DNA from: Leidyana gryllorum EB-2025a | Taxonomy: Eukaryota > Protista > Apicomplexa | DNA: 64,000 nt | Direction: 5' to 3' | Assembly: GCA_048772705.1 (NCBI GenBank) | Contig: JBLWGC010000205.1 | Coordinates: 62,001-126,000 of the forward strand | Shown: piece by piece, positions 9,947-57,354 of the stretch | Layout: every line of letters begins with the position of its first letter | Position numbering within the stretch: the stretch's first letter is position 1 | Notes under the pieces: model-generated | Told to the model about the DNA's origin: nothing | Database searches by the model: none | What the model saw: the letters and a program-made list of their open reading frames with translations, nothing else | Program-made: the position numbers and the translations under genes

Positions 9947-12900
9947 ATGGAAGAATTGTCCTATATACCATTACGCAAACTTCCCACCCACATTATCAGT
10001 AATCCAAACCTCGGACGCGATCTCCTCAACACATACAATCCCGCAACCTCCACTTTCGTACATCGCCTAGCAGCCCTTCAATCCGCTGCAGTCCAACGAA
10101 ATGGCCACTTTGCTGCCAAACTTGCTGCTCACGATACCTCACTACTTATCCGCAAAACTGCCCGCGCTGTCGCCGCCAGATGTGCTGACGCAGACCCCTT
10201 GATGCAACTCGCTGACGCCGCCGGACACTGGGAACGTGCGCATCTACTCAAAGAGCTACGCAAACGAAACAGATTCGATGTACTCGATCGCATACTCGAA
10301 ACATTCCGTAACAGAGGCTGTGTTACAGACTTCTTGGATACTATGCCCTATGGCTCCGCAGCCTACGTGCGAGACGTCTATCCCCTCTATCACGGCTGGA
10401 TGTCAAACAAGACGATGACTAGACTGGCCAAGCTGCATCCCGCGTTTGCAATTAACGCACTCACGAAATTAATTCAAGAGGCGAAGCTCATCGACGACAT
10501 CTTGATGCAGCAGTTTCAAGCCGTCCTGCGCGAAACAGGACGCCGTTTACCGAATGAATGCATTGACTTACTGGCTGCCGTGTGTGCGAAAGTCGATCGC
10601 ACACGTTGGCCGGTCCAGTTTGCCTCTGAACATATCACCGCCAAAGTTTTCCTGGACTGGCTCTTGGAGCATCCGGATTTCTTGAAGGACGATGTAAAGC
10701 TCCGAACCAAGTTTTTGAGCCGCTCAATCAGTGCCACCGACTTTGTGGCTAAGGTTGTTGGGACCCCTAAGATCCTCACCGTAAATACCTGGAGCTCAGT
10801 CCACTCGAAGATCATTCGTCGTATATGGGACGCCTTACCGGCTGAAACTCGGTCGGAGACAGTTTTTGCTGTATCCTTTCTGGACAAGCTGCCCCGCGAA
10901 ATCCGGCGGTCCGTCGCTCTGAACATCATTGCGAGACTCGAGAAGTCCACCGACTTGAAAGAACAGGAGAAAGCTGTGGGATACTACCCGTTATTGAGCT
11001 GGAAAGAGGCTATCGCAGGGTTGGAGGCCGATAAGAAAGTGTCTTGGATGAAGACTGGGAGTGATCTTGGTCGACTGATAGCCAAGTGGCCGGAACATGT
11101 GCGAGAAGGATGGACTCTGATGATTCGGAAGTCGAAGAAATCTATCGAAGTAAACAGCGCTTATCACAATGATCCCTGGAAGGCTGTGCAGCACATCAAG
11201 CCACATCTCATAAGCCGCGACATGGTGCTGCAAGCCCAGAAGCTGTTCACTACAGAGGGTGATCATCGGTATGATTGGAGAAGGACCCAGGCTTTGTTGT
11301 ACCTGCGTGGGCAACTGGTTGTGGACTATCCCGATATCGTGTTGGCTTGGGATCGAGGAGCGTTTGGTCAGCCTGGACAGGACTGGAACATTAAGAGTGG
11401 TCGTACTTTTCGGGAGTCTAATGATGGTGGAGAGGTGGATCTTCGAAAATACTTTAGGTTGACGAAATCTGAGTTCTGCACCATTTTCATCGAGAAAGTT
11501 CGGGCACTCAAAGTGATCAACAGTACTGAACGTTCTTTCCACGGCGTTGACGCCAATATATTCCACCTGATGAGGCAACTGAGTCCTATCGCCGATCAAG
11601 TGCCCGAGCTGCTGGTCGAGATGCTCGAGCTTGTTGAGTGGGACAATATGAGCCCATACTCTTTCCAGTATCAGCTGACGCCGGCAGTGGATGCCTGTGG
11701 GAAGAAATTCTGGCACTTCCTGACCGAGAGGCTCAGCAGCGACATGAGACTGCTCCAGATCCCGAGTCTGGCCGATCGATTGGCTCGAGAAGCGCCAGAC
11801 ACTCTGAACAAATACCTCGAGTTGAAAGGACTGATACCCCCCGAATTGTGCGGGAAGAGTGTCAAGGAGACCGTCTTTATCCCCCACCTGGACCCCTCTA
11901 TCCAGTGCAGGTACTGGTCAGTGAAACAGATGGAAGACTACGCTGCGATGTTGGTGGACTATACCTATAAACTCGAGCAGTTACACACCAAATATGCCGA
12001 AGACAGAGCCCTCAAACGAGCCGAACAGGCGGCCTCCCTCGAAGCTGAGATGGCTGAAGGCAACCTTGACGCCGAGGAGGCTGAGGAGGTCGAAGATGAG
12101 ACGATGGAAGACGGCGGCAGTCAGGAGGACGAGGCAATGGCAGAAGGCGAGGAAGATTCTCCCTCTCCATCTCCTTCTAATGACCCCAATGCGATCAAAG
12201 TTGCTGTCGACCCGAATAATCCTTTTACTTGGACTGAGCGTGAACGATATACATTGGGACAGGGGCTGCAGCAGATGATGGAGTGTTTGGCAAAGCTCCC
12301 CGTGTGGGACCCGTATACATTGAAACCGTACATTGACCGGACTCTGGAAGGTACTGAGATGTATCTCATCCGCGAAATCATCAAGTCGTTCGGGAAGATC
12401 GACAACGTCAGTGGGAGGATGATTCTGCAGGAGTATTTGTTAGGCGACCAGGCGCGAATTGCGATTTATGCCATTCGACCTGCTATCAAATCAATGAGGA
12501 AACAAGAGCTTCTGGAGATGTGTAGACAATTAGCCTGGAAGGGTGTGTCGGTGGCCAAAGAGGTGGTGCGTCTGATGGGTGTGGCTCAGCTCACCGAAGC
12601 GCGGGACGAACTAATCTCGAGCTTCCGCAGTGTCGAAGAGGGCAAAAAGATGCACAGAGACGTGCGGATGGCTGTCGTTCGGGCAATGTGGGACTACTTG
12701 TCAGACGAAACCACTTGGGACTTTCTCGACTCCACCCTCAACGACGCCGATATGCGTGTGACTCGCAAAGTCTGTTGGGTCACAACTCACGATGTGCCCC
12801 CATTCTGCATCCAGCGACTCCTAAACTATATCTTCGCGGTCCTCGGGAAAGGCGATATCAAGTTGGTGTCGGGTGTGATGCAACGACTCGCCGAGCGACC

Positions 12901-13787
12901 TATAATGGACATGTCGGGTCAGCTGGTCGGCCGACTGATAGAACACATCGACATCAAAGACGATGGGGCCAGAAATAACTGTCAGAATGCATTGCGTCAG
13001 GCCATGATGCGACTCGAACCGGCCGTTCGCGACGCTTTGGTGAACGATATGTACGAAAGAAGTCTGGAAACAGAGGAGAAAATGGCGAGTATGTGCACCT
13101 TCCTCAAGACTTGGCGATGGATACAAGGCGACAAGGACGAAACCGAGAAGGCGGTCATGCGCTACTTGAAAATGCTCCAGAGGTTCCCGGCTGGCGAACT
13201 CAAAGCGCCAGAGCTCCTCACCGTGATGCAGGACACCACCGCTATTCTGGACTACTTGGATGACCTACGCGCCCGAAACCCCTCGGTGTACCGCTATGTG
13301 GTGTGGAAGCTTGAGCTGCCAAGGTCGTCCAAAGACCGTCTACGGATGTTCCATATGGCCCGCGATCGACAACAGACGCGCCAGCAGAAGCAGCAACAGC
13401 AACAGTCCTCTCCCACCGCTTACGAAGACGAAGCTTTGGTACATTTCCGGCTGTTCCACCTACTGGCATTGGACAATAACGGAGAAACGAAGCTGAAGAA
13501 CACAGCAGAGCTCCTGGAGGAGTATCAAAACATGACTAACTGCCCAGCAATCCAAACATTAGCAATGTTGATTCAAGGTGAGCTCGGGAATTTGGTGGTT
13601 TGGGGGCAGTTTGCTTTGGTTTGGTTCGGTTCGGTTTGGCTTGGTTTGTCTGTGTGCATCGGTTGTTGTGCAACTGAACGGTGTTGCTTTGCGGTTGTGC
13701 ATGATGCAACGTGTGTGTGGCGTGTTTGAAACCCTAGTTGTAGTGTGTGAGGATGAGAAGACTGATGGCGATGAGGAGATGGTTGAG
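9947..13787 (+). CDS. Large alpha-helical (HEAT/ARM-like) hypothetical protein, about 1200 aa; 3' end unresolved
   Basis: Single 3.6-kb exon from ATG 9947 to a donor at 13578, plus a small acidic exon at about 13744-13787. Helical-repeat-like segments GDQARIAIYAIR, VSVAKEVVRLMG and MHRDVRMAVVRAMW. Confidence 0.7.
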
Positions 13788-14277
13788 GTAATATTGGGTG
13801 CTGAGAGCGCGTCAGCTCGAAAGCGGCGTCGAGCGTTGGGGGGTTATCGGAGGATACGGACAGGTTTGCCGTGTCCGAGCCATGTGGTCAGCCGGGTGCG
13901 AGCTCTGCGAAAGCGCGCGTTGCTTTGCAGTGAGTAGTAGTTGTTTTTGGTGTGCAGGGGCACTCGCGGGTGAAGGGGAGTGAATAGGATGGTTTTGTTT
14001 GGGATTGATTGATTGTTGGTGGGCAACTAACTGATAGTTAAGTATGTCTCTTGTGGGCAGCTCAAGGAGGCATCGGAATTAAAGTCCCTTTCATGTCTGC
14101 TTCCCCCTACGACGCTACCGCAAAGAGCCCCAGTTCCGTAAGTGGGGAGTTATCCGATAGTGCAGGGAGCAGAGCAGCCGATCTACTTAGGGAGCGGATC
14201 TGTTTACTTATAATATTCTTTATGGATCTGTTTCTTTGTAGGAGGAAGCTAAAGCAGCACCCGGAGCCAAACGGAGA

Positions 14278-17083
14278 ATGCTGAACGATCGCTCCGGGTT
14301 TCCGGTCGGGACCAACACCGGTTCTTCCGACCGACGACACTGGCAAACGGACAACACAGATTCACCTACCACTCACTGCGCTCGCAACGACCTCCCGCCG
14401 CAGCCGCATCCTGAGGAAGAATTTTCCCGCTCTGGTGAAGCGATGAAACAGGAGCACACAGACAATCACCACCGAATCGGAGGTAAACCCGCACCAATCA
14501 CCCTCACATCCTCCCCCACGCACCTACAAACTCCCAAATTCATCCTCAGGTCGGGTACTGCTGCTACGCAATTTATCGCAAGCAGTGGTGGAACATGACG
14601 TTGAGACTTTCGTGTCACCCTTTACTCGTTCTGCCAACCCAAAGATATATCTCCAGTTCGCTGCTGGCCAGGCCTTTGTCGAATTCGGGGTAAGTTCGGA
14701 TCCCAAATCGGAGTCCGTGCCAGCAGGCTGTGTCACCACACTGTGTCCACACAGTGTGGGGGGCGTGTGGCCTGTGCGAAGTGTGTAAAACAGTGTGCGA
14801 CACCATCTCAACCGATGGAGGGGCCGGTATACCCTTTTCAGAGCACTCTCGGAGCACTTTGGCCCGCCCCGACACTTTCCCATGTCTGTTTCACCAGGCC
14901 TTGCGCCGTTCCTGGTTCAGATCGTTTGAAATGGATGTTTTTGCAGACGCCTCAGGAAGCGAGCGACGCTTACCGCTACTTCAAAGCGCATCCTACGAGT
15001 CTGAAGAGTCAGACGGTCCAGGTTTTCTTCTCCGACCGCGAGTCGGTCACCGCACCCGATGAGAAGAACACAAACTTCCGAGTCTTGCTGGCCACTGTGA
15101 CCAATCTTATGTATCCTGTTGACATTGAGCTGCTTCGGTTCCTCTTTACCCGTTTCGGCCGGGTGCAGAAAGTGAGTCACCGACCCGACAAGCCTTCGAT
15201 TCCACACCCGTGTGTTCAGATAATTTCGTTCTCGAAAGCGAATTCCGCTTCGACATTCCAAGCATTGGTGCAGATGGCTGACCCGCAAATGGCTATGGAC
15301 GCACTCAAGGAACTGCACGGCCGTAATATCTATGACGGATGCAATACGCTCCAGGTACTCTTTGAGATTGTTTGTTTCTCCCATCTCTCTGGCCAGATCC
15401 AACCAAGCCGGCTACCCGAACTGGTCGTTCGGGTGAACAACAGCCGAGCCTGGGATTACACTGTTGCGCCGGAAGGTAGGCTAGGGCTGAGACGGGTGTG
15501 GAAAGTGGACTGCAGGTGTACCTCCTCGTGCTGCAAGTAGTTCGGCCGATGGCCCGAAGTCTAGAACGGTGAGTAATCAGATGCCGTCTCCGGTCTTCTT
15601 TGGCGATATGAAACCCTTTCTTAGTCGCCACACGTTGTACCCCGTGGTGTACCTGATGAAAATCAGATGCCACAGGGTAACAGCAATAATATCGCTGCGC
15701 GTTGCAACAGGTAACTTTGCACTGAGTGTGTGTTCCCCTCATATCCCAGTGTCAGTCCTGGGTTTCACAAAGTACTCGGGATGGCCCGCCTTCCCCGCGA
15801 AGCACGGGAATGGAAGGCGGCATTGCTCGCGCAGTCGGTTATCCCTTCTCCTGTCTTGATAGTCTACAATCTCACTCCTAATGTGGTCACTGTTACTGAG
15901 CTCTTCAATGTCTTTTCACTCTACGGCGTGCTCTTGAGGATCAAAATTCTTCGCGACAAGCCTCACACGGCTCTACTCCAATATTCTGACCCTCTGTACG
16001 CTTCGCTTGCTGCCCATTTCTTGCAGGTAAGCCCACTTTTCTCACTAGTCCCGCCAATTTACTCTTATCAGGGAGCTGCGTTATTTGATGTGGATCCTGG
16101 AATGCAGATCGGTTTCTCTCGCAACGCTGAAGTCAAGTAAGTCTAATCACCGATGTGTGTGTGTGTGTGAGTGTGTGTGTGTGAGTGTGTGTGTGTGAGT
16201 GTGTGTGTGTGAGTGTGTGTGTGTGAGTGTGTGTGTGTGAGTGTGAGTGTGTGAGTGTCTCTCTCCCTGTCCTTTGTCTGACTCTGTTAGCGCTGAGTTT
16301 CGTTTGCCAACACTCACTTTCCATTGCAGACTCTCCTCGACTGTTGGCCCTGACACACTCCGACGAACTCGAGCGTTCCATCCGCAGGAGCAACGGTACA
16401 ATGTGACCGACTATTCCACTCCCGACCTTGTGAGTTCCCAGTAGTGGATAACTCAATCAGACTTTCTGCTCCGCAGCCCAATGAAGTCGAGAAGTTCATT
16501 AGGGCCGCTTGTCCACCCACCTGCACCCTATTTATAGCAAATTTGCGGGAAAACGTGGAAGGTGAGTCAGCACTCTGCGTGTGGGTGTGTGGAGTGTGGA
16601 GTGTGGAGGTGTGTGCTCCACACCCCCACACGCCTCCACACACCAACTGCCACACATCGACTTGAACATGAAACGATTGATTGATGCAGAATTCGAGATT
16701 CGGGAGCTTGTTGGTCAGTATGGGACTATTACTAAGGTTCAGCTCAAAGCTCCAACGGACGGTTCACGACGGCGTTACGCCATGGTGGAAATGGCCTCGC
16801 GCCACGAGGTGAGTTTGATTATGGTTACCGTTATCGCTCGCTTGACTATTAGGCATTATACGCTTTGGCTCACCTTCACAACTCGGCCGTGGACGGACAG
16901 AACATTAAGGTGGCATTCTCGAAGGTAGTGATCTCTGACAATGGAAGTGGTGCGGGAGAGAGTCCGGAAGGGCGTCCCGCGTCCCCAAGCATCCAGGGTC
17001 AGCAGAGTGGAGAGGATAGTTTAGCGGTGCCGGCGGAGAAGCCTGAGCACCTTACGGCAGACGAAGCGACGACTTCGGCTTAG
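14278..17083 (+). CDS. PTB: Polypyrimidine tract-binding protein / hnRNP L family, 4 RRMs, multi-exon
   Basis: RRM1 GRVLLLRNL...QAFVEF. RRM2 VLLATVTNLMYPV...FQALVQ...GRNIYDGCNTLQI. RRM3 SPVLIVYNL...LFNVFSLYG..RIKIL. RRM4 PPTCTLFIANL. Start codon uncertain (14278 or 14443). Confidence 0.88.
16154..16258. repeat. (TG)n/TGAG intronic microsatellite
   Basis: About 105 nt of gtgtgtgtga repeats inside a PTB intron. Confidence 0.95.
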
Positions 17084-20400: not shown

Positions 20401-21976
20401 AAGCAGAGGTCAATAGTTGGTGCACATACTTCCGGCAGTGAGTGCCGGCATTGTTGGCAGCAATGTTTGTTGGACAGACTGGTTTCACTGAATGCGGCTA
20501 AGAGGGCTGCGGCGAAGCCGATGAATCCGACCTTGCCAGTTGACTGGGATGTATGGCAAAAAGTGGCCGAGTCCCTATTGACAGGGTGGCGAGAAGCCCG
20601 GAAATTGATCAGATCGCAGATCCGCGAGCAGGTACACGATAGTCAAGGTGCCGAAGCCTGGCGGTGAGTTGTTCAGGCGGGTTCCACGGACTTGATTGGT
20701 TCGACCCCTCCTGTAGCCTCTTAGAAGTCTTGGCAATGTTATTGGGCAAATCTAAACGAGTCCGCGCTTGGGACGTCCTCATGACTCCTGATTTCCGGTC
20801 TGATCTGATGAGAGAAGTCTACCACACCCCCGAAAAGGCGGCAGCCGATCCTGCCTATGACCTAATTCACCAAATGGTGAGACAGAGGCGAGACGACCAG
20901 TTCGGCCTGAATGGGGCGAACGGTACCGCGCAAACCTTTGACCATTGACCATTGACCTTTGACCTTTGACCATTGACCTTTGACCTTTGACCTTTGACTT
21001 CCAACCTTCAACCTTCAACCTCCCACCTCCCACCCCACTCCCACTCGCAGTTCACTTCCTCTCCTCCCCGCAGGCAGTCGAAACAGCGCAGCACTATCCG
21101 TTATTGTGGGTTCCATTACGGTCTGCGTGTCGATTTGGAGAGCGGATGATGAGTCCGGTGGAGATGGCGCGTGCATTGGACGCGAGCGGAGGAGTGGAGG
21201 TCGCTATGAGTCGGGGTGACGGTTTGGATGTGGCCAAAGGGACGACGGTGGCCGAGTTTATTCCGACTGGCGGTAAACGGAGCGGTGTGAAAATTGTGGA
21301 GCGGCGCTCGTTGACGGCGAGCAATGGGAAACATCACAGCTCCTCTTCTTCGGTACCGAAATTGAGGGAGAACACCATGTCGTGCATGGCGGCTTGTGTT
21401 CGAGTGGAGGCTTTTCTGCTGCGTCATGGGATGCTGGCGGTGCCGCGAGAGGCTCACTTGCAGCTGTTGGGATGGCTGAGTTTGTTTCTTCCGTTCCAGC
21501 GTGACATTGGATTAGTTGTGGCCGCGGCGGTGTTGGTGGCTCTGGACGAGCAGGCGGATGAGCTCACCGAACACTACGACTTTAGCGATCTCAACAACGG
21601 GACCGATCGATTGTTGACCTACATACCATTGAATGTAAGTACATTGAAATGTGTGTTTGTGTCCGTGTTGGGGTGTCGAGTGACTGTGTGTGTGTATACT
21701 TAGGCTGCGCATTGGCGGGAAATAGGGTTTGACGTGTGGGTGAGTATTGTATCGTGGTACCGGAGTGGGTTTGCTGCGGGTTTACCCGTGTCGATGGTGT
21801 GCGAGTGGCTGTGCAAGGCGGCATACGAGGGTTTCGAGGAGGTCGGATTGAGGATAGTGTGGCACCGAACAATGCAAGATAGTGCAGTGCTGCTGGGTCA
21901 TCAGGACCTCGTAGTTTCTTACTCCTTTCACAGACCGCGGATTGTGGAGCGAGGAGAAATTTTACTGGCAAGATGA
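17417..21976 (+). CDS. Sec7-domain ARF-GEF-like protein with a C-terminal TBC (Rab-GAP)-like segment, multi-exon
   Basis: Sec7 motifs LDFQGMDVGAAVR|FYAAHVPISGESQVIYRCLDAFAR (glutamic finger) and DGILVIAYALVMLNTSRHN. The last exon HWREIGFDVWVSIVSWYRSGFAAGLPVSMVCEWLCKAAYEG resembles the TBC C-terminal subdomain. It could be two genes. Confidence 0.65.
20935..21020. repeat. 7-bp tandem repeat (T/A)TTGACC decaying to TTCAACC, intronic
   Basis: acctttgaccattgaccattgacctttgacctttgacc... is directly visible. Confidence 0.9.
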
Positions 21977-24052
21977 CGGATGTAGATCGAAGCCGACCGC
22001 CTCCGGCGCCGGCACCCGAGTTGGCTACCACCACCCGCTTGGTGACACCAGCTCAGCGCACAGCAATATCCCCAGGAACCTTAACGCCGCCATGGAAACC
22101 CTCCACAGTGCCGTCTCTCTCCACCTGGTCCTCGTCTCACAAGGCAGCACGGAGCAGCTTGGGCACCTCTGTGCCGCCCACGCCCTCCTCGTCGCTCGGC
22201 GGGAAGCCCAGAGCCCCGCCCGCCACCACTGCCGTCCTGCCGACCAGCCGCAGTGGGGGCAGCGCCATGCCGCCGACTGGAGGTCACCACCGATTCGGTC
22301 AAGCGGTCTTCAAGGGAAAGGAACCGCTACCGCCCGACGCACGCGTCCGCAGCGTGACCACTCATGCGGGCCAAGATCAAGTCTTGGCCGAGTATGTCGT
22401 TGAACATGAGATCAAAGTCCCCAAACGCACCACGCGCGAAGATTGGATCGAACGCACATATGTTGTCCCCGAACGAGTTTTAGTCGAAGAGGTCGTCGAG
22501 GAAGCTGCCAGAGTCGTCGAACGCGTCGTAGAAGTCGCCCAACCCGTTGTCATGGAAAAGATCGTCGAGGTCCCGGAATTCGAATACATTGAAAAGGTTG
22601 TCGAAGTCCCCCATAAAATCGTTCAGGAGAAAATCAGAGAAGTACCGCGAGTAGAACTTCAGGAACGAGTCATTGAGGTCCCACGACTCGTACCCAGGGA
22701 AAAAATCGTCAATGTACCCGTCTATGAGTACCACGAATTCCCCGTCGAAAAGATCGTCGAAGTTCCTGAAGTCCGAGAACAAGTTCTCGTCAAAGAGAAA
22801 CCGGTCCCCCGATATGTCGATCGCCCCTTCCCTCAAGAACGAACAGTCCAGGTCGAGAATGTCATTGAGAGACGGACACCTGTTCCCGTTGAAGCAGTCA
22901 CCTATTTGCAACTTCAACTACCCAGAATCAGACCCGTCTATCAACAATTAGAAGTTCCTGTCTACGTACCTCGGTTCATTGAAGTACCCGTTGCCGCCGA
23001 ATTCTGCGATGAGGAGTTCCTGGGTAAGTCTCATATGCATCTCAACAATGGGCGCGAAACACCGAATACCCCCCGTTCACGCATTGTGCAACACGTTGTG
23101 CAACAAGGTGTGCAACTAGGTGTGCAACAAGGTGTGCACTTCAAGTCGGTGCAAACAGACTTGTAGTGGTGGCTATGCTCCCCACTTCGGATTTTGTCTT
23201 CTTTGATTGATTGTTGCGGTTTCTGCAGATAAAGCGGATCGATGTATCCAGGAGGTGTCGAAATTAGTGACCCACCGTGCTGGTGAGGCCGTATCAATGT
23301 GTGCAATGGAGGAGACGGCGGGGCTGGTTCAAGGCTATCAGTTTGACGAGATGTTATGTCAGCAGAGGTTCGCTGAGAATTTTGCACATTGGTGGCAGTC
23401 GAATCAAGTGACTGTTGATGAGATGAGTTTGCGATCGATCTGTCAGACGATAGATCGTGAAGGGGGAATGGTGACGGAAGCGGTCTCGGTAGTGCGGCGG
23501 AGTTCCGTGCCAATGACGGCCAAAGCGACGAGTTTTACGACCACAACGGCAGGCTGTGACTCCAACACTCGCCTAATATCAGCAGCGACAACGTCGCAGC
23601 TGCCGCCTCAGGGCGATGCCTTGCGCCACAGTCGACCGCCGCTGGAGAGCGGGACGGTGTCGACGGAGACTCGGAATTCATTGGGCAGCGGGCACGATGT
23701 GGAGTATCACTTGCAGCAGCACAAGCAGAAGAAGGTCCCGGAGGCGAGGCCCCCCGAGTTTCCGACGATGCAGAGAATTTCTACGGAGGATTTAGGCGCC
23801 CCTTTGCCGCTGAACAATCCTCCGGCGTTCGGGTCGACCAGCAGCGTTGAGAGCGAAGCTCCGGAAGACGAGGAGGAGATTGTGCGCCATACTGAGGCGG
23901 AGGAGCAATTAGGGCACGAGGGCGACCAGGAGGAGGAGCTGCCCGAGATTTCTGTTCTAAACGACGGAGGAGTGCCCGGGAGCGCTCATACCACTCCTTC
24001 CACTGACGGACGGATAGAAAGTAGTGCTTATTGTGAGGAGGCAGCTAGTTAG
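21973..24052 (+). CDS. Alveolin / inner membrane complex (IMC1-family) protein
   Basis: Val/Pro/Glu/Lys repeats EKIVEVP, EKVVEVP and ERVIEVP, plus the family C-terminal motif VPVYVPRFIEVPV. Intron at about 23024-23229. Confidence 0.88.
23085..23138. repeat. 12-bp tandem repeat (GTGTGCAACAAG-like) in alveolin intron
   Basis: tgtgcaacacgt tgtgcaacaagg tgtgcaactagg tgtgcaacaagg tgtgca. Confidence 0.85.
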
Positions 24053-25407: not shown

Positions 25408-25502
25408 GTTTGTTTGTTGTTGAAAAGGTGATTGTGAGATACAAACACGTGCAGAACGGGTGGACGATTGTTGGCGAAAAAGACAACTCAGGCTATTCGG
25501 TG

Positions 25503-37968: not shown

Positions 37969-38069
37969 GGCGCGTGTGCATGCCCTTTAGGCTCGTGTGT
38001 TAGGGAGCACACGCGCCACAAAGTCCGTTATCGTTTCTCACGGGACTGAAAGATTTGCCTCCGAGGCGT

Positions 38070-40994: not shown

Positions 40995-41011
40995 CGGGCG
41001 GCCCAATTTTT

Positions 41012-43228: not shown

Positions 43229-43240
43229 ACTTCTCAACCT

Positions 43241-44009: not shown

Positions 44010-44911
44010 ATGGATAGCCTTCCACAAGATGTCATTATTACCATCCTGATGTTCCTGCCAATAGGAACAATCAGGCGAAGCCTCGTAGGCGTTAGTAAAA
44101 CGATGCAGAAGATTGCGGACGCAAATGTCGTGTGGTAAGATCACCGCCCCATGGGAGAGCACACGTGTGTGCGACTATTCGCCAGGCATCAACTGTACTT
44201 CCGTGATTTCATCGGTGCCCGTCAGCAAATTCGAAAGGCCCCTATCCGTAAACGAAGAAGAACAGAGAGTCGTAGTGACTCTGGTGGACTGAAGAAATCA
44301 CGCATGTGTCCCTTGGGTGCTGTCGCATCGCACCCAGTGGATGGGACGTGTTGGAAATCGTTGTATATGTCACGGCACCACAAGATTAAGGAGAGTAAAG
44401 TCTTCGCTGAAGAGTCGAGCGATGTGCAAAGCGCTATAATGGACTTGGAATTGGCTCAGTCGATGATCATTGAACAGGCGTCTAACCCCGTGTCTGAGAC
44501 TGACGGTAAAGGGGGCAATGGGGATGCTGTGGCAGCGCTGCCGCCGGCGACCCCAGTGCCAGTGCACCAGTGTGGGGAAGCTTGTTGCGAAGCGGTACCG
44601 AACAAAGACTTTCCTGGCGTGTTTGTGTGTCCGATAACGGGTCAGTTGATTGACGCGGCCCGCATCAGTCGGTACCGGGGATTGATGCAGTCTTGGGACG
44701 ACAGGTGGGCTAAAGGGAGGGCGGGAGTGGGAGTAGGTATGATTTTTCCAGAGATAGTTACAATCCGTTCGAGGCGGAGGACGTGGCGGAGGAGGCAGTG
44801 GACGATTGGTCTAAAGGTTTCTTTGGGCGCTGTTTCGCTGACGGGTACAACTGTCTGAGTGATCGGGAATTCGAGTGTCGGTTTGGCACAACAGTGAAGG
44901 GACGTCGGTGA
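44010..44911 (+). CDS. F-box protein, SKIP31-like
   Basis: N-terminal F-box SLPQDVIITILMFLP...VSKTMQKIADANVVW|HQLYFRDF (first exon absent from the ORF track). VHQCGEACCE...VCPITG and C-terminal FGRCFADGYNCLSDREFE. Confidence 0.7.
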
Positions 44912-44936
44912 TCCATGTTACCATAACTTTTCGTGC

Positions 44937-47900
44937 ATGGACTCGCAGCGCAATGATCCTCTGGCCGTGTATAAGGAGTACAAACACCGTTTCAGGAGTC
45001 GATTAAGGAACCAGAAGGCAGAGCGAGCGTCGCGTCTGCATTTGTTGACAATCAGTGGGCAAGAGGTATTGATCACATGGGCGGCCATTCAGCTTATATT
45101 TCATCTCACGACGGGTCTGAATAGTGGCGTGGCAAACGACGGCGCAGTCAGAGGTTATGCGTTTCTCGCTCTGACAGCGGTGCAGTTTCTGGTCTCTTTG
45201 TTGGGTTTCGCTGGTGCCCACTTACTCGGCCAACCTCGAATCGCCTTCTACCTGCTGATCGGTCTCATTCTCTTTAATGCGATATTCCTCCCCATAGCCA
45301 TCTGGTTCCAAGAAGGCGCCTTCGAAGAAGCGACGTGGCTGCACGCATACCAAGTCTTCGCTCTCTCTGGCTACAATTTCCTCCTCCTGTGCAGCCTCTC
45401 CTTCCTCCATTGGATCCTTACTATGATCTGCTTTGCTGTTCGAAAGGATGACCAAGTACTCCGACGGTATATCGTTGAGGCTGCGCGTCTGGGCGTCGCC
45501 CTCAACTCGAATCCTTCCCTTACATCCGCCAAGGTTCTCGCTATCACCGCCATCATCCCTTCAATGACCATTGCTCGTTCCCTCGGCCTCGACAGCCATC
45601 ATCATAACCAACTACACCCTACTCGCAACGCTCAAATTCTCCTACCCCCAATCGCGCAGCACCTACCCTCACCCCATATCAGAAGAGCTGCCGATGCAAC
45701 CAATGAGACGCCCTCCTGGAACTCCACCAACAGGGATGAAAGTATTGTACTCATCACGCTTGACGAATATGCCAAATTACTGGGCCTCCCATGCGCTTGG
45801 GATATGGTGGTCTTCTCTTGTTTTATCGGATATGGACTTCTAATATACCATATCACGTACATAGCCGCTTTTCTCGTTCTACAGTGCCGGAGGTATATCA
45901 AAAAACTCCATCACAGCCATCCACAGCCATATACTTCCCTCCACACGCCCTTCCACCCCTTCACACGCCCCTTCACACACCCCCTATCGGCAGGTCCTTC
46001 GTAACGGCACTCGGAGGGAACTTCCCGGCTCTCTTGAATATGGAGGCTGTGGTGATGAAGTTTGCTGCACAAGAAATCGTCCAATTCCAACGCGTCGCAC
46101 TAAAGTACGGCGGATCAACCTCTTCCGCCGAAGTGGCGGACACTCGCCATCCCGATCTGGCGCGTCTCGTCAGACGAGCGCCCTCCCCTGTGTCATCTCG
46201 CCCATCTTTCCGACGTGAGGCCGTCAGTCGTACTCAAAGATCGATCGTGCTGACAGATCCTGCAGCTGGCGATGATACCTTCCTACCCTCTCCCGGCAGC
46301 ACCCGAAGACTTCTCCTACCAATTCGCAGGGTGGAACAAGTCCAAAGACCCTCAATCTTCCGTGCAGTCTACCACGGACTATCCGTACAGACTGTCTCAC
46401 CTCAACAAGCGCGTTTGTCGTCTCCTCATATCCCAATGTAGGTGATCCTCTCTGTTGGCTTTTGCTTGATCAAAACATCTACCTTGCAGAGGGACTGCAG
46501 CTGATGTGCTCCAGTCAGACAGATCAGTGAATCCTTATGCTGCCCTGATGCTGGACTCCATAGCGGTGGTTCTGGCGCCTGGAGCGGTAAGCACAACACG
46601 CTGATCAAGCCCATTCCTTGAATAATAGCTCGAGTCAGACGAAGATGAGTCCGACCACCATGGCTCCGGAGGGCTGGGTGACGCCGTCACCCGCTTCTTC
46701 AGTGTTCGGCGACGGATCAGCGACGATGCTCTCCTCTCGGAAACTGGCTCTCAGCTTCAAAATAACAGAAGACCATTTGAGCTGGCTTTTGGCGATCGGA
46801 ATGATTCTTTCAGCTCTCAGAGTGATGCAGAGATGTTCCACGCGACGCATCGTTCGTCTGTTTACCAGAGCAGTGCGCAACGTACTATTCGAACAGATCA
46901 ACTCACTCCAAGCCGCAAGTTCATGAAAACTCTCCGGGATGTCAGGGTTTTCATGGCCAATCAGCAGAGTGTTCCGAATACTGCGTCACCACGAGCCGAT
47001 CTGGAGTCCAATGCCAAAGGTTCGGATCTAGACGCCAGGACGACGTCGCTAGTCAGTCACGCCCCCTTGCACTCCGTAAGACCAGCAGTGAATGTTGGAG
47101 TCGGTATGCCTCCGCATCAGGGTGCCAGTGACGCAGATTCCCGGCCCCGATCCCGCAGGACCGTGCTCCGGAATCCTATATCTGACACCAGGTATGAATG
47201 CTTGTTCCGGCGTCTCCGTGTGGGGGCACACACACGTGTGTGCTTCAGAGTGAGTGTGTAAACTTCAACATTTACCCCGTTAGCACCCACTACCTTGGCT
47301 TACGAGGACGCATGGTCGCTCTGACGCAAAAGTTGCGGAAGCGGGTGAGCCTTTGGCGGGCGGCGGCGATGGAACGAAACATGTTTTGCAGACATCGTGT
47401 AGGCGGAAGGGGAAGAATTTGTCGTCGTTCGCGGACTCAGTTGCTCACTCATTCAGTAGCCTCCAAGCTCCACCCCCAGTTCCGTCGTCGACGACGGAAT
47501 TGGGACGAAGCCGTATGTCCCGAAAGACAATGGGAAGTCAGACGGGTCAAAGTCTGCATTCACGTTTGCCTCCGATGAACTGGTCGTCCGGTCGAACGGC
47601 GGAATCGCCGAGTGGATCGGCGTTGGATCAGTTGCAGCATCACCCACACAATCAATCCGCCACGAGGATTTTGTCTTCATATCGTTCTGTGGGTCGTTCG
47701 CCTGATACAGCGTTGACGAACGTGACGACAACGGACGACCGGTCATTCGATGACTTTGGCTCGAGCACGAGCGGGGCTGATTATGACCCAGACGTTGACG
47801 ACATATGGATAGGAGAACAAAGCAGTTCTCGAGGGGGGCAACAATGCGCTCCCTGGTTGCAGAATACGTGGTTAGCTAGAGTGATAAGCCGGTGCAACCA

Positions 47901-50160
47901 GGCGGTAACCCGATTCCTGAAAGCGTTGTTCAACTACATACACTCCGTCTGCCTTGCTCGCGAGATTACGATATTTCCAAGTTCCCGCCGGACGAATATT
48001 GTGAGTGTGAGTGTCCTATTTGATCAGTCGCTCCTCTTTCTGCCTCGCCCTTCCTCCTCTGTTGCTCCCTGTGTATGTGTGTGTGTGTGTGTGTGTGTGC
48101 TGAGCCCTCCCCCACCCCTCGTCTTCCCGAACACCGTGTTTTGAGGCTCGTTGCAGGTGCTGCCGGAACAGTCGGTATTTGGTAACTTTACGAATCGCAA
48201 GTATGAAGGTTGGTACTCGGAATGGTTACAGTCATTCTGTCCGAATCTGATCCACTACATGAGCCGTCCACTGCTGATTTGCACGTTGATTCAGGGCGTC
48301 AACGTGTTGGCCGAGATAATGGCTTTCATACCCCGCGCCGTCCCGGCCCTGAAGGTTCAGGAGGCCCAATGGACTCCGACCGAAGAGACGGACTATGAGA
48401 GTGTCCTCCGACTGGGGGCCGTCTATGTCTCCAACAGACGCTTGGAAGACTGGAATCCCGATATATTGAGGGTAAGGGTGGGATCAAATCAACTGGGCCC
48501 CTCTCTCACATTGTTTTCAAAGCACGTCATAGTATCTACTCTGTCACTGCGCTGTTTCCTGCACATGGCGTTGAACATTGTGATCATTTCGAATATGGAT
48601 TTCTCCAAGAAGTCGACTCTGGGGAGGAGGCTGCAGACGCGGTCGTTACAGGCAGTCCTGGTTCAATACGTATTTGCACTGTTCGATGTGGCGTTCCAGG
48701 CAGTCATTCTGGGCCCTTACACGAGTGCTGGATTCAGAGGACTCCCCAGTACTGTCTACGCCGCGTTTGCCTGCACTCCCATCTACGGTTCGACCTTACG
48801 ACTCGTACCCCTGACCTTTGTGATGTGTATCTTCTTTGCAGCCGTGTGGCTGACCGAAGGCCTTTCCTTTTGGTTGATGAGCATTCTGCTCACCAATTTG
48901 CTCACCAAAATAGCGTTCATGATCGCGGCGCTGGTACTTATCGCCAGGTAAGCCCTTCAAAGTGCCAAGTGTGTGTGTGTGTGGCTGCGTGCCTGTGTGG
49001 CTGTGTGAGTTTGTGAGTGTGTGTGTTACTGATATCGGTGTCGGCACAGAGCATACGACCTGAAGCGGCGACAAATATTCGGGAAATGTGTTCTTCCGTA
49101 TATGATTTATCTCGCGGCGCTCACCGAATGGGTTACGAGCACTGAAGAGAGCCAGAAGCATGCTGGAGAGGTGAGTAAAAGTCTGGGCGTCACGCTGGCT
49201 GATGAGAGTTGGTCGCCGGTTTCTCCCCAATCTTTCCCCTGCCCCCCCAATCGATCCCTTACTTCCCATCTGCCACTGCAGAACGGCTTTTTGTTGACTT
49301 CGGAGGATGGGGGGAGTGACGCGAATAATGACTTCACGCCCCCCGATGGCATTCCCCAGAAGTTTATGAATTGGTCTCAAGATCGGAGTAGAAGCTCACG
49401 CGGGTCGTCTCCCGCTTTCAGTTCCGGTCTGGATGTATCGGGTCGGGTGGCGAGTTTGACGGCGGCAAGCGTTCAGCGTCGCAGGTCTTCGACGACTGTC
49501 CAGCTGAGCAATCAGAATACCCCGCAGACTCTCCAAGTGATAACCCACAATCCCTCTGTCGAGGGTGGCTCACTACGTCACGTACTACCGCGAAGAGCTC
49601 GACGGTCAACGGCTGGTGAAGACAGTCTCCAGCTACTCGACTTCACTTTTGAGAGTGGTTTAGCAGCTGCCAGTTTGAGCTCCGCTGACGAGTATGTGGG
49701 GGCTGGTGGAGATAACGATGGCAACCTCATCGAAGAATTGAGTATGCCCACAGCCGAGGACGATCTTCTGTTACCACGAGATCCATCACTCAACTCACTA
49801 CCCCTCTTGGATGTCGTCTACGAAGCGCAATTAAGCTCGAGGCTTTCTAGCCCAGCACAAAGGGTGTCGGTTGAACCCCCAGACGGAATCAGCACTCTGG
49901 CTCCCGTGGAGACCCCCGTGGCATCGGGCCCTGCGTTGGCCCCGTCTCCTACACCGTTACCTCCTCTGGAGACAGAGCTGGCGCCGCTGGAGTTGCAGCT
50001 TTTCCCAAAAGGGGCCGCTGGCACTCGTAAACAGCTTACTCACCAATTAAGTCTCAGCGACTCGGAAGTCCATGTGAGAGTCAAACCAATAAGAAGTCCG
50101 AGAGCCCGGAAACCCCCCCAGAGGATAAAGGTTCGGATCCCGCTCCATTCGCCCAGATGA
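44937..50160 (+). CDS. Large multi-pass membrane hypothetical protein, multi-exon (possibly more than one gene)
   Basis: Two clusters of hydrophobic helices (about 45060-45900 and 48250-49130) are separated by Ser/Arg-rich loops. GT-AG introns link the ORF fragments. Confidence 0.55.
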
Positions 50161-50620
50161 TCTGAGCGTATCTATGCGCTGGCCCTGCGACAGAGACCTC
50201 CTAGATCGAGACCAGGCAAGGCCAGGCGCCTACCCCAAACAAAATGGAGAATGATATCTAATAAGATGATTGAGGATTGTAAGAATTTGACTATACACCA
50301 CAAGGGAATGCTTTTGAGGACTTGAGGACGGGCGGACGACCAGAGAGAGATTGCTACACACGAGACGAGATCGTTGCACACGAGACGAGACGAGATCTTT
50401 GGTGATGATTGAACATCAGGCCGACCGGTCGGGTCGTGGGACACCGGTCAGGGAGCCGAAAGGCCTCTTACAGCCTTACTCAATTGTGAAATATCCGGTA
50501 GTGAGTGCATGCGTGGAGTGCGCGGTGCATATTATCTTGTCTCCCCTCTTTAGGTAACACACACACACACAGTAGAGACGTGAGCTGTTGGAGGTCGAAC
50601 GTGTTCAAATCGGTATCAAG

Positions 50621-51019
50621 ATGAAACTCGGTGAGATTTAATGTGTTTTGTGATTGAATTGAGGTCGATTGTGCAGGTCAATATCTCTTCGAGCGGATAA
50701 AGCAGGCGGGTGCTGATCACGTGTTTGGGGTCCCGGGTGATTTTAGCATGGCATTGTTGAATGCCGGGCTTAAGTCTAACCTCGAATACATTGGCACGTG
50801 CAATGAATTGAATGCAGCCTACGCCGCTGATGCCTACGCTCGAATTAAGGGTTTGGGTGCGTGTGTGACCACATATGCAGTGGGAGAACTATCCGCGGTT
50901 AACGCTATCGCTGGCGCATTTGCCGAGTCTGTGCCGGTAGTTATGCTTGTGGGGTCTCCGTTGCGTCAGTACTATGAGCATCCGAAGCTGTTGCATCACA
51001 CACTGGGTGACTACAAGGT

Positions 51020-51066
<47 letters not shown>

Positions 51067-52560
51067 TGTGAGTGAGAGAATTGAGCAATATATCTTGGTG
51101 GTTTGTGGGAGTTGCCCAATATATATATATCTCTTCCGTTTGTGCAGATACCTCAAAAGATGTACGAGTCTATAACTGTGGCGAGCTGTTTGTTGGATGA
51201 TGAGAAGACGGCGGTGGCAGAGATAGATCGTGTTTTAGCTGCTTGTTTGCGGGAGAAGAAACCGGTATACATTTCAGTACCGTCTGATATGGCGATGGTG
51301 GATATTGAGCCGCCGAAAGACAAGTTTGAGTTACCTCCATTGGACAAGTCGGACGAGGATACGTTGAAAGAGGCTGTCGATGAGATCATTAGTCATTTGG
51401 CTAAGGCCAAGAAGCCCCTATTGCTTCCCGGAATTGAGTGCATTCGTCGCAACTTGACTGATGAGTTTGCGCAGTTGGTTGACAAGACGAACATTCCTTT
51501 TGCAACGATGATGCTGTGCAAAGGCATCTTGGACGAGGATCACGATCGGTTCATTGGACTCTACAGCGGCGCTCGCTCCCGCACGGAGGTCCAACAGCGC
51601 GTCCAGCAGGCCGATGTGATATTGGTTTTCGGCGAGAAGTACACCGACTTCAACACTGGCGGATTCACGGCCGGCCTCACCCACCAAAACTCCATCTACA
51701 TCGACTGGAACTGTGTTCGAGTCAACAATCACTATTTCCACAACATTTACATCCACGATGTGCTGAAAAAGTTGGTCCAGGAGGCGCCCTCGTTCGATCC
51801 CAACGATCTACCCGTCTCCAAAGGCAAGGATCACTGCGCCCATCGACCAGAACTCGTCTTCAAGAAGGAGGGAAATACAAAGCTCACCATGGACCGCTTC
51901 TTCAAGCGTATGGCCACTCTTTTCAAGGACAAAGCAATTGTAATGGCCGAGACCGGCGCCTCCCTATTCTCAGCCGCTGAAACCAAACTGCCCCACAAAG
52001 CCACCTTCATGACTCAGACGTTCTACGGATCCATCGGTAAGACACACAGAAAACCCCAATTCACTCCACTTCGACCTCAGGATATACTGTTGGCGCCTGT
52101 TTGGGGGCCTGCATTGCTGTCAAGGACAAACCCGATGTCCCTGTCTATCTATTCGTCGGAGATGGCTCCTTCCAGGTCACTGGCCAAGATCTCTCTACAA
52201 TGATTCGCTACGGCTGCAAACCCAACATATTCATCATCAACAACGACGGGTACACCATCGAACGTACCATCTACGACAATGTCTACAACGACATTCAAAT
52301 GTGGAAGTGAGTCCATAGACACCATACTCACACACACACTTACTAACTCCAGATATGCCGACCTCCCAGAGATTTTCGGTGGAACAAAGGGGGCCAAATG
52401 CCAAACAGAAGAAGAATTGGAACGCGCAATTGAGCGTTTCGAGGCAGATAAAGAATCTAGCGCTCGAGTATATGAAATTGTGTTAGACCGCTGGGATTGC
52501 AACAAGCTCCTCATTGCTGCTGGGAAGCTCATGGCCAAAAACAACAAACTCGACCAGTGA
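50621..52560 (+). CDS. PDC: Pyruvate decarboxylase / 2-oxoacid decarboxylase (TPP-dependent), multi-exon
   Basis: MKLG|[51 protein letters not shown] and the TPP motif GDGSFQVT...[10 protein letters not shown]. Confidence 0.93.
51022..51060. repeat. (GT)n microsatellite in PDC intron
   Basis: Perfect GT dinucleotide run. Confidence 0.95.
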
Positions 52561-52596
52561 TGGACAATTTAGAGATTGTGATCAAACAAACAAAGG

Positions 52597-55500
52597 ATGG
52601 ACGGCGGAGTTGAAAAACCTGGATGCCTACCAGCTGGCGATCCGCACAATGTTATGTTGTCACAAGTAGCTTGCCTCACTGCCAGCGACGGGACACCCCT
52701 CATGCCTGGCCAGATGTTGCCCATAAATGTCGGCCCACCTGTAATCCGGCCATATATAGGGGGAGGGGGAGCCGCCCCTAATGCTGCCTCCTCACCACAA
52801 CAACTCCATCTCGCGCCGGAGGACATGCACTCGCCACTCATGCCTTCCCGCTCAACCACCGGCGCCCAGATGGAACTCCGTCGCCCACCGCCCCTCGCCG
52901 CAGCGTCCCTCGGCCTCTCCGACTTCAAGTCTGTCATCCTCGTCCTCCACAAGCTCACTGGACTCGATCGCTCTTTCTTGGGCGAGGTAAGACTCCGCCC
53001 TGTAATAAGATCGCCCACATCTTTCCTTCAAAGCGACGCTTGCTCTGTATGGTGACCTTTGGGTCGAGTCAGGTCCGCACGAGTATGATTTCTGCCCCGT
53101 CAGGCGACTCCGACGAGTTGGTCCTGGGCTTCATCATCAGACTGCCGCTGCCTCCCACACTGGATCAGCCACTAATGTGAGTACCCCTTCATAATAAACT
53201 AAATCAATCTATCGTAATCCAATCTAATACAGTATAAGCATGCAAGACTCCATCTCCAAGGCCATCGTAGCCCAAGGACAGCTCGATCCCGCGACCTTCC
53301 CGCTCAAAGCCGACATTGCTATCAGTGACACACACGTAAGAGCGAGCGCGACCACACGCGTGTGCGTCAGGAGACATATGGTCTTTGCAGCTACATCCCC
53401 GCGGATGCCTCAAGTATCACTTGCAGCTCATCCATCAACCGACTGGATCTGCATCAGTCCAGCGGATGGCAAGCATTCCTCACCCGACTGACCAGCCACA
53501 ACAGTCGCAACATACTCCCGTTATGGCTATTCCGGCAGCTACCACTAATGTGCCCGGGCTTCGTATGCCACCCATGCGGCAGACCTTGTCCCCAGAGGAG
53601 TTTGCACAGGGTCAGACCATGTTGTACCGTCCTCCTGAGGTTTCTCAGCCACCGATCTCGTCATTTCAGATGGCCACTCCACTGGCTTCGGGTATCGGAA
53701 GCATGAGTAGTGGTGGTTTACCACCATTGAATGCCGGTCCTCCGCCGTCCCTGTTGAGCTCGAGTGGGCCACCAGTGATGCCTGGATACCGGGTTGAGAA
53801 CTACGCTGAGTTGGGTAGAGGGGCCATTCCCGCATCCCCTCAGTACGCCTATCCGCCAAACAGCGCGCGTGTGACACGACATGTGGCGGATTCCACTTTT
53901 TCAGAGATATCGTTGGGGCCAACGACACCACCGCGGTATTTGAATCAGGCTTACATTAATTCCATGAACACTCGAGGTTCCATAGAGAATAACACGACGA
54001 GCAGTTGGGACCGTCGTAGTCACCATCGTGCGGCCTCGGAAGGCGTCACGGTGGGGGGGCGACGGGTGTTCACCCAGCGAGGAGGGGTGATGGCTGGATC
54101 AGGTGGGATGACGGTGACTGGAAGCAGCAGTCGTCCGACGGCATTCTCGTCTACGTATCTGAAGCGTGAAGACGGGACTCTCCAGGCAATGCCCCACATG
54201 CGTACGAGTCCACTGGGGGTATCTGTGATAGAGAGACTGGGCCAACCGAACCGCAACAGCGTTGGTTCCATAACCGGCGGCGGTGTGGGAGGAGCGGGTT
54301 CTCGGCGTTCAGTGTTACCGGCGCCGATAACAGTGATGAGAGGCGAAGCGAGTGTGACTTCGACGCTTCCCAAGTTGGGGGACACTCTGCAGATCAGCGA
54401 AATACCGCTTCACATGCTTCAGTGTCCTCCTTTGTGTGAGACGGACATTTCGGAGCTGTTGAGTCGTCTGAGTGTCGGAATGAGTGAAGAAGGAGGGCCT
54501 GCGACGGTGGTTCACCCGTTCCGTTCTTTGAGTATTCGATTGGATTCATTGGATGCGATACTGAGTTCCGGCGGCATTTGTTCATTGATGTTGCGTGAGA
54601 ATGGGATCGATTCGTCTGACATTGTCAAATTGCGGGCCCGGACGGAGGAGGAGGAGGTGACAGGCGGCACGATACCCACTTTGATTATCCCTGTTGACTT
54701 TCACGGACACAACTTGGAGCTGAGGATCACTTTGTTATTGGGCACAGAGTGTGGGTCGGTTGATATTCCTCTCCACGGACTCTTACGTCATGGCCAAGTC
54801 ACCCTCACGGGGGGCGCTGAGCTGACGGGTGGTCTTCTCCGTCATCGTCTGCTCTTCTCGCTGCGGTTTCTGCCGTTGCCAGTGCACGCGCCGGTGTTGA
54901 TGAGGCCCGAGTCCAAGTATTTGGTATCGATAATCCCGAGTCTGTCGGCCTCTTCCACTGGAGGCGGGTTCCAGCATCCCTCCCATCCGGCGTCTCACTC
55001 GGCTGCACAGCTGCAGCACATCACACCAACGGTTGTGGAGCACCACGCCGGGATCGCCACGGGACCGATGGCTCTGCGTAGTGCTCGAAGTGAGAGTGTA
55101 ATGTCGAATGAGGATCAGGGGAGTGTGACTGGGAAGGGCGGGAACTGGAATCATTTGGTGGTGACAGTGCGGTCCATTGACGACTCGGCTAACCCCATTC
55201 CAATGGAAATCGAAGGTGTGACTACGAAGGATTTGTACTGTAAGGTGTCTCTCGGTACCACAACAGCCCTAAGGGCCCGATTCGTCAATTGGAGACAGGA
55301 GGGCAAGAAACTACCCGACTTTGAGTTTGAACATAAAGGCGAACGAGTGCTCAAACTGTCGCTCGTTGGAACCGACCCCAACAGCAAAGTGAACCTCGGA
55401 GTGTGCAGAATCGACCTTCACGCTCTCTCGAGGACCGGAAGGGCGTACTTCCGCGGACGCGTTCCGGTAATAAAGGCAGGGCGGTTGGTGTGACAATAAT

Positions 55501-56271
55501 GTTTTACTCTTGCAGCTGGCGGGCCACGCGTCCTTCCCGAACGCGCCGTTCCTCAATTTGGTGTTCAAGTTTGGCTACAAAGCCACGGACGGGACTGAGG
55601 GAGAGACGATTCCCAGAAACCCCAAAAGTGCGACCTCCTGGCGCCACGCGCTGGAGGGTTGCACACACTTCCAATTCACTATCCATAAGATCTCATCCAA
55701 GGATCTGTCCCTGTTGAGATCGGTGAGTGGGGCAATAGTATCAATTATCATTCGTATTGGAATTGTTGCGCAGTCCTTTTGCATCAGACTGAGCTGCGGC
55801 TCGTTCCGGTACAAGACGACTCGGCTGGAACTGCCGCCTGCCGCCGCTGGAGATAAAATCAATGAGTTCAATGGTCCAATCACTTTGGAGGCTGAAGTAA
55901 CTCCGGAGCTGCTGGACACTCTGGAATTGAAACCATTTGTGTAAGTCTCCCTCCCAAGTGTCTGTCTGGCGGAACCTCACTGTCTTGTCAGGGTGTGTAT
56001 CTATGTCAAGCTGGACAGCCAGGCTGTTACGTCCGGCTCGCACGTGGCGTATCAATTTTTCCGTCTGTCCCCAAGTCACTTTGCCATACCGAGTCCGCCT
56101 CCTCGGTCCTACACTGGGGAACAAGAGGTAACGAACGCTGGCTGTGGTATTGTGGGGAAACACACAATTTTCTCATTGACAGATGACCATTGCTCAGGAT
56201 ATAAGCTCGACGGAGCCCAGGTGTACTATGCAGTACACTATGTTTGCGTCCTCCAAGCGTTAGAACTGTAG
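52597..56271 (+). CDS. Multi-C2-domain-like protein with Pro-rich linker, multi-exon
   Basis: C2-like beta segments SVILVLHKLTGL, HLVVTVRSIDD...DLYCKVSLG...LGVCRIDL. Confidence 0.55.
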
Positions 56272-56388
56272 TCCACGAACCTTCGCGCCCCCGCGGGCAG
56301 TCAGTCCTCTATTTCTTGTGTGATGAATGAGTCTCAGCGTGTATCGACCCCCCAAATGTCGCCACAAATTTTCTCCTCCAGATACAGA

Positions 56389-57354
56389 ATGATGACCTTA
56401 CCTCCTGCATCCGAGCACCACCAGCCGCAGACTCATACGCACTCCCCCACTCAGACTGGAACTTCAGTCATCGGTGTTCGATATAAGGATGGAATCCTTC
56501 TGGCCTGTGACACCTTGGGTAAGAATCGAATCCCCCGCCACCGCCGCCACTATCCTTTTTCAGTCTCCTACGGACACGGCAAACGCTATCAATCCGTCCA
56601 GAGATTCTTTCCTATCGGCAACAATATGGTTTTAACGGGTTCTGGTGATCACTCCGATCTCCAACACATATGTGGCCTCCTCAAAAGTATCAAGTGAGAC
56701 TCGAAATCTCCTCAAATATCCACACAAACGCCATCAGTCTTCGGGACGTTGTCATCAATGACGGCAACAGCATCTCCACGCGGGCGCTCCACAGCTATCT
56801 CACACGAGTACTCTACGAGAGGAGGAACAAAATGGATCCTCTCTGGGGCACATTCGTCCTGGCTGGCAGAGACCGCAATGATTCTTTGTGAGCCAATTGT
56901 CGATCCACCAACACATCCTCAACCCACACAGCTTCTTAGGATCAGCCGATATGTGGGGAACGGCACTTCGCGATGAGCCATATATCGCCACATCTATTTC
57001 GTCGTACATGGCTATGCCTCACCTCCGTCTGGAAGCCCGTCCCGATATGACTGAAGAGTGAGTGACTTCAGTCTCAACTAAGACTCACACTACTCTGCCT
57101 TGCAGACAAGCCCGCTCGCTTCTGATGCGGTGTCTGACTATCGGCGCTGGAGTCGATATGTCTCAGTCCCAGGAAGTCCAGTTCACCAAAGTTAGCTCCG
57201 AGGGCGTTGTTGTGGAGACTCCTATTATTGTAACTCCCAATTGGTACGTTCCATCCCTCCGTTCCCACTCTACATTACCAATCCTCCTCACAGGGACCGT
57301 CAAGACTTTGTCAAGTCGCGCTTAGCTATGCCGCTGTGCTCTTATCCATACTGA
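56389..57354 (+). CDS. PSMB4: 20S proteasome subunit beta type-4 (beta7/Pre4), multi-exon
   Basis: PTQTGTSVIGVRYKDG, DTL.SYG, SGDHSDLQ and YLTRVLYERRNKMDPLW. The last exon ends at TGA 57352-57354. Confidence 0.9.

Follow-up and report, generated by a model that had tools for sequence, protein, structure and literature searches.

Tight gene packing in every orientation on a contig of the eugregarine Leidyana gryllorum, and its probable bearing on overlapping transcription

Kinetoplastid transcription units comprise tens to hundreds of genes, without introns and with spliced-leader trans-splicing, and nematode operons are marked by a distinct class of intercistronic distance together with SL2 trans-splicing. 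In the compacted genome of the microsporidian Encephalitozoon cuniculi, rapid amplification of cDNA ends revealed 5' untranslated regions (UTRs) of less than 7 nt and transcription overrun; RNAs of a single gene occur mixed with multi-gene RNAs, and signals are located at times in the adjacent coding sequence (CDS) (PMC2803860). For the apicomplexan Cryptosporidium parvum, short reads showed UTR overlap on both strands and long reads identified 201 transcripts of 2-4 genes, involving 10.7% of genes (PMC11761812, Xiao et al. 2025 preprint); monocistronic transcripts internal to these units occur beside them, and a spliced leader is absent (PMC11761812). Here we analyse the spacing and orientation of genes in a 64,000-nt stretch of DNA from the gregarine Leidyana gryllorum EB-2025a (hereafter the window), which corresponds to positions 62001-126000 of contig JBLWGC010000205.1 (167,655 nt) in the 15.5-Mb assembly GCA_048772705.1. 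An earlier note on this DNA had described its genes as operon-like directional clusters with near-zero spacers.

Genes on this contig are packed 0-500 nt apart whatever their orientation, and this independence of tight spacing from orientation is the most telling point against operons. Very short spacers were found in all three arrangements, with ranges of 7-36 nt for the tightest tandem pairs (7, 17, 25, 25, 31 and 36 nt), 0-77 nt for convergent pairs (0, 74 and 77 nt) and 29-91 nt from ATG to ATG for divergent pairs (29, 40, 52, 52, 53 and 91 nt). The median tandem gap is 127 nt and the median divergent spacer 53 nt, so that tandem neighbours are not the closer ones. The extreme case is convergent: the TAG of a plus-strand gene for an H1-like protein rich in K, A and P abuts the stop codon (CTA on the forward strand) of a minus-strand DRG GTPase gene at 2773-2778, leaving a spacer of 0 nt at 2775/2776 that is bounded by two stop codons and is thus unambiguous. 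The DRG GTPase is recognised by Pfam matches that include a weak TGS domain, and its reading frame ends in what we take to be the usual ending of the family. The closest divergent pair has its ATGs at 60456-60454 (minus) and 60486 (plus), 29 nt apart with an A6 run in the spacer, and the minus-strand gene opens with a signal-peptide-like sequence, MISLLLVWCLGVLAAV. Five further divergent pairs on the contig have ATG-to-ATG distances of 40-91 nt, the widest being that of an ADF/cofilin gene (minus) and a 1210-aa open reading frame (ORF; plus) at 9853-9949, whose ATGs are 91 nt apart. Convergent and divergent pairs cannot share an mRNA, and therefore their UTRs and promoters either overlap the neighbouring genes or are extremely short.

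Among co-oriented neighbours, five stop-to-ATG gaps of 7, 31, 25, 25 and 36 nt had been claimed in the earlier note, and base-by-base reading reproduced their coordinates and lengths exactly. All five are on the plus strand. The shortest, 7 nt, separates the TGA at 565-567 of an acyl-protein-thioesterase-like gene from the ATG at 575-577 of an ORF spanning 575-1513. A 31-nt gap lies between the TAA at 32185-32187 and the ATG at 32219-32221 of a gene spanning 32219-33866, whose own TGA (33864-33866) is followed after 25 nt by the ATG at 33892-33894 of a gene for a ~580-aa protein (exon 1 at 33892-34031, intron at 34032-34079). The second 25-nt gap, from the TGA at 44909-44911 to the ATG at 44937-44939 of a multi-pass membrane-like ORF (44937-46004 onward), joins two partners without a Pfam match, and the 36-nt gap runs from the TGA at 52558-52560 of a pyruvate-decarboxylase (PDC)-like gene to the ATG at 52597-52599. 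On the minus strand, the stop codon at 41012-41014 of an NDOR1/Tah18-like reductase gene (Pfam matches to NAD_binding_1 and Flavodoxin_1) is 17 nt from the next ATG at 40994-40992; this pair and that at 33866/33892 are tight tandem pairs with defined ends. The partners in these tight pairs are functionally unrelated (thioesterase/unknown, reductase/unknown and PDC/unknown).

To place these gaps in the context of the contig, genes were modelled along its full length with our own two-strand Viterbi gene finder with explicit introns. Neighbouring genes were still merged in several of its models, and the statistics were therefore computed on both merged and curated sets. In the window, a single exponential with a mean of 150 nt describes the 20 curated tandem gaps (Kolmogorov-Smirnov p = 0.93); under it, 4.3 gaps of 36 nt or less are expected and 6 were observed. 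The short tandem gaps belong to the tail of a single distribution and do not form a class of their own. The eight strand blocks of the earlier note were borne out by the coding evidence, which gives four plus, four minus, ten plus, four minus, six plus, one minus, one plus and two minus genes, and our count of about 32 genes agrees with its ~31 within the uncertainty of gene splitting. The main blocks are one of ~10 plus-strand genes at 9947-35787 (encoding the 1210-aa protein, PTB-like, Sec7-like, alveolin and CK2 beta proteins, a ~1300-aa protein and four proteins without a Pfam match), one of 4 minus-strand genes at 36424-43971 (RRP36, the NDOR1-like reductase, a ~800-aa gene and CERLI1-PH) and one of ~6 plus-strand genes at 44151-57325 that includes the PDC-like gene.

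These blocks amount to 8 strand runs in the window vs 15.4 expected (z = -2.97, curated models), and the 104-kb flanks of the same contig show 25 vs 20.8 expected (z = +1.4, raw flank models). Over the whole 167.7-kb contig (~72 genes), a runs test on gene orientation gave 31 runs vs 36.8 expected (z = -1.4, or -0.8 with a tandem gene family collapsed), and conservative merged models gave 31 vs 32.5. There is no contig-wide clustering, and the description as operon-like directional clusters was not supported: tandem gaps are continuous and not shorter than divergent spacers, and the clustering is gone in the flanks. Co-orientation is weak at best and local, and the run of same-strand genes in the window is a local fluctuation. 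For comparison, an annotated contig of Gregarina niphandrodes carries 13 genes in 5 runs, but with 11 genes on one strand and a sparse annotation it is uninformative; around the GDH gene of that species, tandem gaps are 155-460 nt.

Set beside the systems described above, this locus fits the compaction kind and, by its strand runs and gap distribution, differs from kinetoplastid units and nematode operons. It resembles compacted microsporidia (E. cuniculi, Antonospora locustae) and nucleomorphs in that neighbouring genes are separated by only a few to some tens of bases whichever way they face; unlike the microsporidia, the genome is larger and rich in introns, and no AAUAAA peak follows its stop codons. 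With C. parvum it shares a related lineage, a compact genome and functionally unrelated neighbours, although in C. parvum multi-gene RNAs have been seen by long reads and by reverse transcription PCR and here the evidence is gene layout. Upstream regions in C. parvum are also marked by E2F motifs, whereas E2F-like sites are not enriched before starts in this contig. Like kinetoplastid units, the window holds co-oriented runs of functionally unrelated genes; unlike them, its blocks comprise only 1-10 genes, its flanks alternate as if at random, introns are plentiful, and long unidirectional clusters with rare strand switches are not seen. Finally, short distances between co-oriented genes recall nematode operons, but the gaps here follow one exponential, and the earlier note saw no obvious trans-splice acceptor in them.

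We also looked for sequence signals that might indicate where transcripts begin and end. Depletion of ATG triplets before predicted starts is limited to the nearest ~15 nt (4 observed vs 14.8 expected, uncorrected, or ~13 after removing two positions unable to hold an ATG), with a ratio of ~1 further upstream, and at each of the five plus-strand gaps an out-of-frame ATG lies no more than 35 nt upstream. Both the confined depletion and the nearby upstream ATGs are suggestive of very short 5' UTRs. Transcriptome contigs for GDH from related gregarines are 1629-1659 nt long for a 1.4-kb CDS and therefore have ~230-260 nt of total UTR, far above the capacity of the gaps here. No peak of AATAAA was found after stop codons, and E2F-type patterns (GGCGGGAA, TTTSSCGC and related ones) show no enrichment in the 300 nt that precede starts. 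Of 30 divergent starts, 15 have an A/T run no more than 40 nt away, yet such runs do not discriminate, as the per-promoter rate is equal in tandem and convergent spacers. A search of the 15.5-Mb assembly for a spliced leader, which covered the dinoflagellate/perkinsid type with a query that we take to represent it, returned one match with 3 mismatches.

Two motif occurrences were seen in the course of these searches. One is TTGGCGGGAAAT at 21712-21723, which closely resembles the E2F site reported from promoters of C. parvum; the alveolin ATG (21973) follows ~250 nt further on. The region between this site and the ATG reads as non-coding and the upstream frame is not coding-like; an 'ATGA' stop/start overlap at 21973 is therefore doubtful. 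The other is the apicomplexan palindrome GCATGC (TGCATGCA), for which 13 of 38 strand-counted matches fall in the 300 nt upstream of starts vs 4.3 expected (small numbers); one copy lies 10-15 nt upstream of the start of the CERLI1-like gene at 37968.

Taken together, these observations point to compaction that probably places promoters, very short 5' UTRs and 3' ends within neighbouring genes, most genes remaining separate transcription units. The transcript layout is what we infer from the geometry of the genes. Transcription would begin close upstream of the ATG, at a distance of between a few and a few tens of bases, the start site lying either in the spacer or in the last part of the upstream CDS and the core promoter within the upstream gene; the 3' end of the upstream gene would form inside or past the downstream gene, and transcripts of neighbours would overlap as a result. 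As a by-product, some read-through RNAs with two or more ORFs would likely arise, and by analogy with microsporidia and C. parvum two-gene read-through transcripts are likely from some pairs. The earlier note had concluded that this genome uses polycistronic mRNAs or promoters buried in upstream exons on a large scale; its second alternative is nearly forced by the geometry and fits the convergent and divergent spacers, while the first was not supported.

Contigs from locust transcriptome runs (PMC7643970) were also considered. In two Logan contigs, L015 (SRR5171257) and L016 (SRR5171258), a gregarine amino-acid permease gene, a GDH gene and a convergent deoxyhypusine synthase gene 73 nt away are joined. 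Such joins are compatible with overlapping transcripts in a relative, although a short-read assembly of this kind makes overlap, read-through and DNA carry-over indistinguishable and that gregarine is less compact. The runs were made for a study of microsporidia, and they hold permease, deoxyhypusine synthase and GDH transcripts (the GDH 65% identical) of what is an unrelated gregarine.

It could be argued that the tight gaps are artefacts of annotation, in which case the pairs would be exons joined by unusual introns, or the true starts would lie downstream and the real spacers would be longer. The genome does offer grounds for this, with ~200 predicted introns in 168 kb, some of them 100-260 nt long, and several neighbours merged by the gene finder, but we regard it as very unlikely. 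Introns able to bridge the five plus-strand gaps would have only weak donors (GTCATT, GTATGC, GTAACC, GTGAAG and GTGATG), with scores from our gene finder of 0.9-3.1 vs 5.5-7.8 in typical introns, and bridging is credible at none of them. Upstream, the gene ending at 567 is complete there because its last exon (412-564) spans Abhydrolase_2 positions 167-214 of 217. The C-termini of the DRG and PDC-like genes are complete if the family endings are as we assume: all three TPP_enzyme domains (_N, _M and _C) were found exon by exon in the PDC-like gene, and its tail ending at 52560 presumably corresponds to the C-terminus of bacterial PDC, on which its completeness depends. Downstream, the start at 33892 is the best supported. 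While a word search of the protein collection with the exon at 34081-35511 found no homologue, a HMMER scan found two and only two, of 578 and 604 aa, matching exon 2 over residues 49-286 (P0121) and 49-294 (P0122). Their N-termini, MKVLSGDDCGFLKL and MRILSGDDCGYLKL, line up with exon 1, MLVYTGDHLGALKL, from the first residue onward, with M1, G6, D7, G10, L12, K13 and L14 invariant in all three proteins, and at the level of sequence comparison this start codon is confirmed by its homologues. The start at 32219 is more flexible on one side: its frame is open only from ~32171 and the protein therefore cannot start earlier unless spliced, and the next in-frame Met, ~190 nt downstream, would permit a later start. 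The ORF at 575-1513 (312 aa) has a low coding score and a word search of the protein collection gave no homologue, though it appears too long for a chance ORF. The doubtful overlap at 21973 is likewise on the side of artefact. Even so, shifting starts to the next Met would leave spacers of 60-220 nt, and the zero spacer between two convergent stop codons is untouched by any of these adjustments.

A different account would have co-oriented neighbours with near-zero spacers expressed from a single upstream promoter as one mRNA, with downstream ORFs translated from it or from processed products. As the main mode of expression, this is modelled on the proposal made for ~11% of C. parvum genes, and gregarines are close to Cryptosporidium, where 201 transcripts with 2-4 genes were reported and no trans-splicing (PMC11761812). 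In its favour, separate signals would not fit into the six tandem gaps of at most 36 nt, the co-orientation in the window is significant, and the search for promoter motifs revealed no clear one ahead of downstream genes. Nevertheless, we consider it unlikely. Convergent and divergent spacers are equally tight, tandem gaps are unimodal, the flanks of the same contig lack co-orientation, and a spliced leader of the type sought was not found. Moreover, the upstream ORFs are rich in ATGs, so scanning ribosomes would not reach a second ORF, and in C. parvum itself the multi-gene transcripts coexist with internal monocistrons. A narrower form, in which this intron-rich genome would express a sizeable share of its tight tandem genes, larger than in C. 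parvum, from genuine multi-ORF mRNAs and without trans-splicing, seems to us improbable as well. If true, it would make polycistrony ancestral to the Cryptosporidium-gregarine lineage and not an oddity of C. parvum.

The interpretation we favour, separate and overlapping transcription units, has its own points against it. Our gene models are ab initio predictions with a weak codon signal, which makes the gene count and the runs statistics approximate, and some flank models may each hide two genes, in which case the contig-wide z could reach about -2 by hand estimate. The downstream starts at 575, 32219, 44937 and 52597 are the first ATG of an open frame, without homology support. The ATG depletion comes from 69 starts and is partly biased by how starts were chosen, and searches around the starts and stops of the contig models yielded no promoter or poly(A) motif by which the signals could be located.

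In other respects the window is normal nuclear DNA from a eugregarine apicomplexan; its GC content is ~53%, and the genome is very compact yet intron-rich. The introns predicted in the contig have GTRAGY donors and a modal length of 40-55 nt, at a density of ~1.8 per kb of CDS. Pfam labels, assigned exon by exon without joined spliced proteins, identify an Abhydrolase_2 thioesterase, a GNAT acetyltransferase, the H1-like protein, DRG GTPase, GDH, ADF/cofilin, a PTB-like RRM protein, Sec7, alveolin (IMCp), CK2 beta, CERLI1-PH, the NDOR1-like reductase, RRP36, the PDC-like enzyme, a PUB-domain protein, a DA1-like peptidase and PDCD2; about half of the window genes have no Pfam match. Ten single-exon models were absent from the protein collection, sequence searches of the PDB gave low-complexity matches only, and a search of the window against Rfam gave no match. 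The gene count is uncertain, as many proteins lack a Pfam match and several ORF pairs (for example, 21973-23023 and 23229-24052) may be exons of a single gene. By protein identity, this is a eugregarine that lacks a close sequenced relative among the collections searched: its NADP-GDH is 65-70% identical to GDH from gregarine transcriptomes (Gregarina sp. Pseudo and Poly, Protomagalhaensia, Blabericola) and 62% identical to that of G. niphandrodes.

Several further features of the contig deserve mention. Bacterial GDH sequences (Planctomycetota, Omnitrophota and others) are 62-67% identical to the NADP-GDH (4531-5916, minus strand), about the same as the 62-70% of gregarine GDH, and G. niphandrodes GDH is placed below a 449-aa match (P0008) and a bacterial sequence from Sumerlaeota. 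In the PTB-like gene and its surroundings (13578-16689), introns of 100-260 nt are unusually long relative to the modal length and full of GT-rich microsatellites, among them (GTGTGTGTGTGAGT)n (16137-16329). The CK2 beta gene (25297-25510) may end unspliced at the TGA at 25374-25376, with the tail ...FGFKVSPECRNPE*, or a strong donor may define an intron at 25351-25400 that joins it in frame to the following 1300-aa ORF; the two are thus either a fusion or separate genes ~130 nt apart. Outside the window, at contig positions 157000-167655, at least 5 head-to-tail copies of a ~2.24-kb unit on the minus strand reach the contig end, each of which carries one gene with an F-box domain, split over two exons (ORFs of 258 and 353 aa).

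The tight spacing also has a practical consequence for annotation, in that gene callers that insist on space between genes, or accept weak introns, can be expected to merge genes or misplace their starts in this genome. If the inferred layout holds, L. gryllorum would represent another independent case in which compaction has pushed promoters and RNA ends into neighbouring genes, and one that is unusual in retaining many short introns. It would also be a natural case to compare with Cryptosporidium, for which polycistronic mRNAs have recently been claimed.

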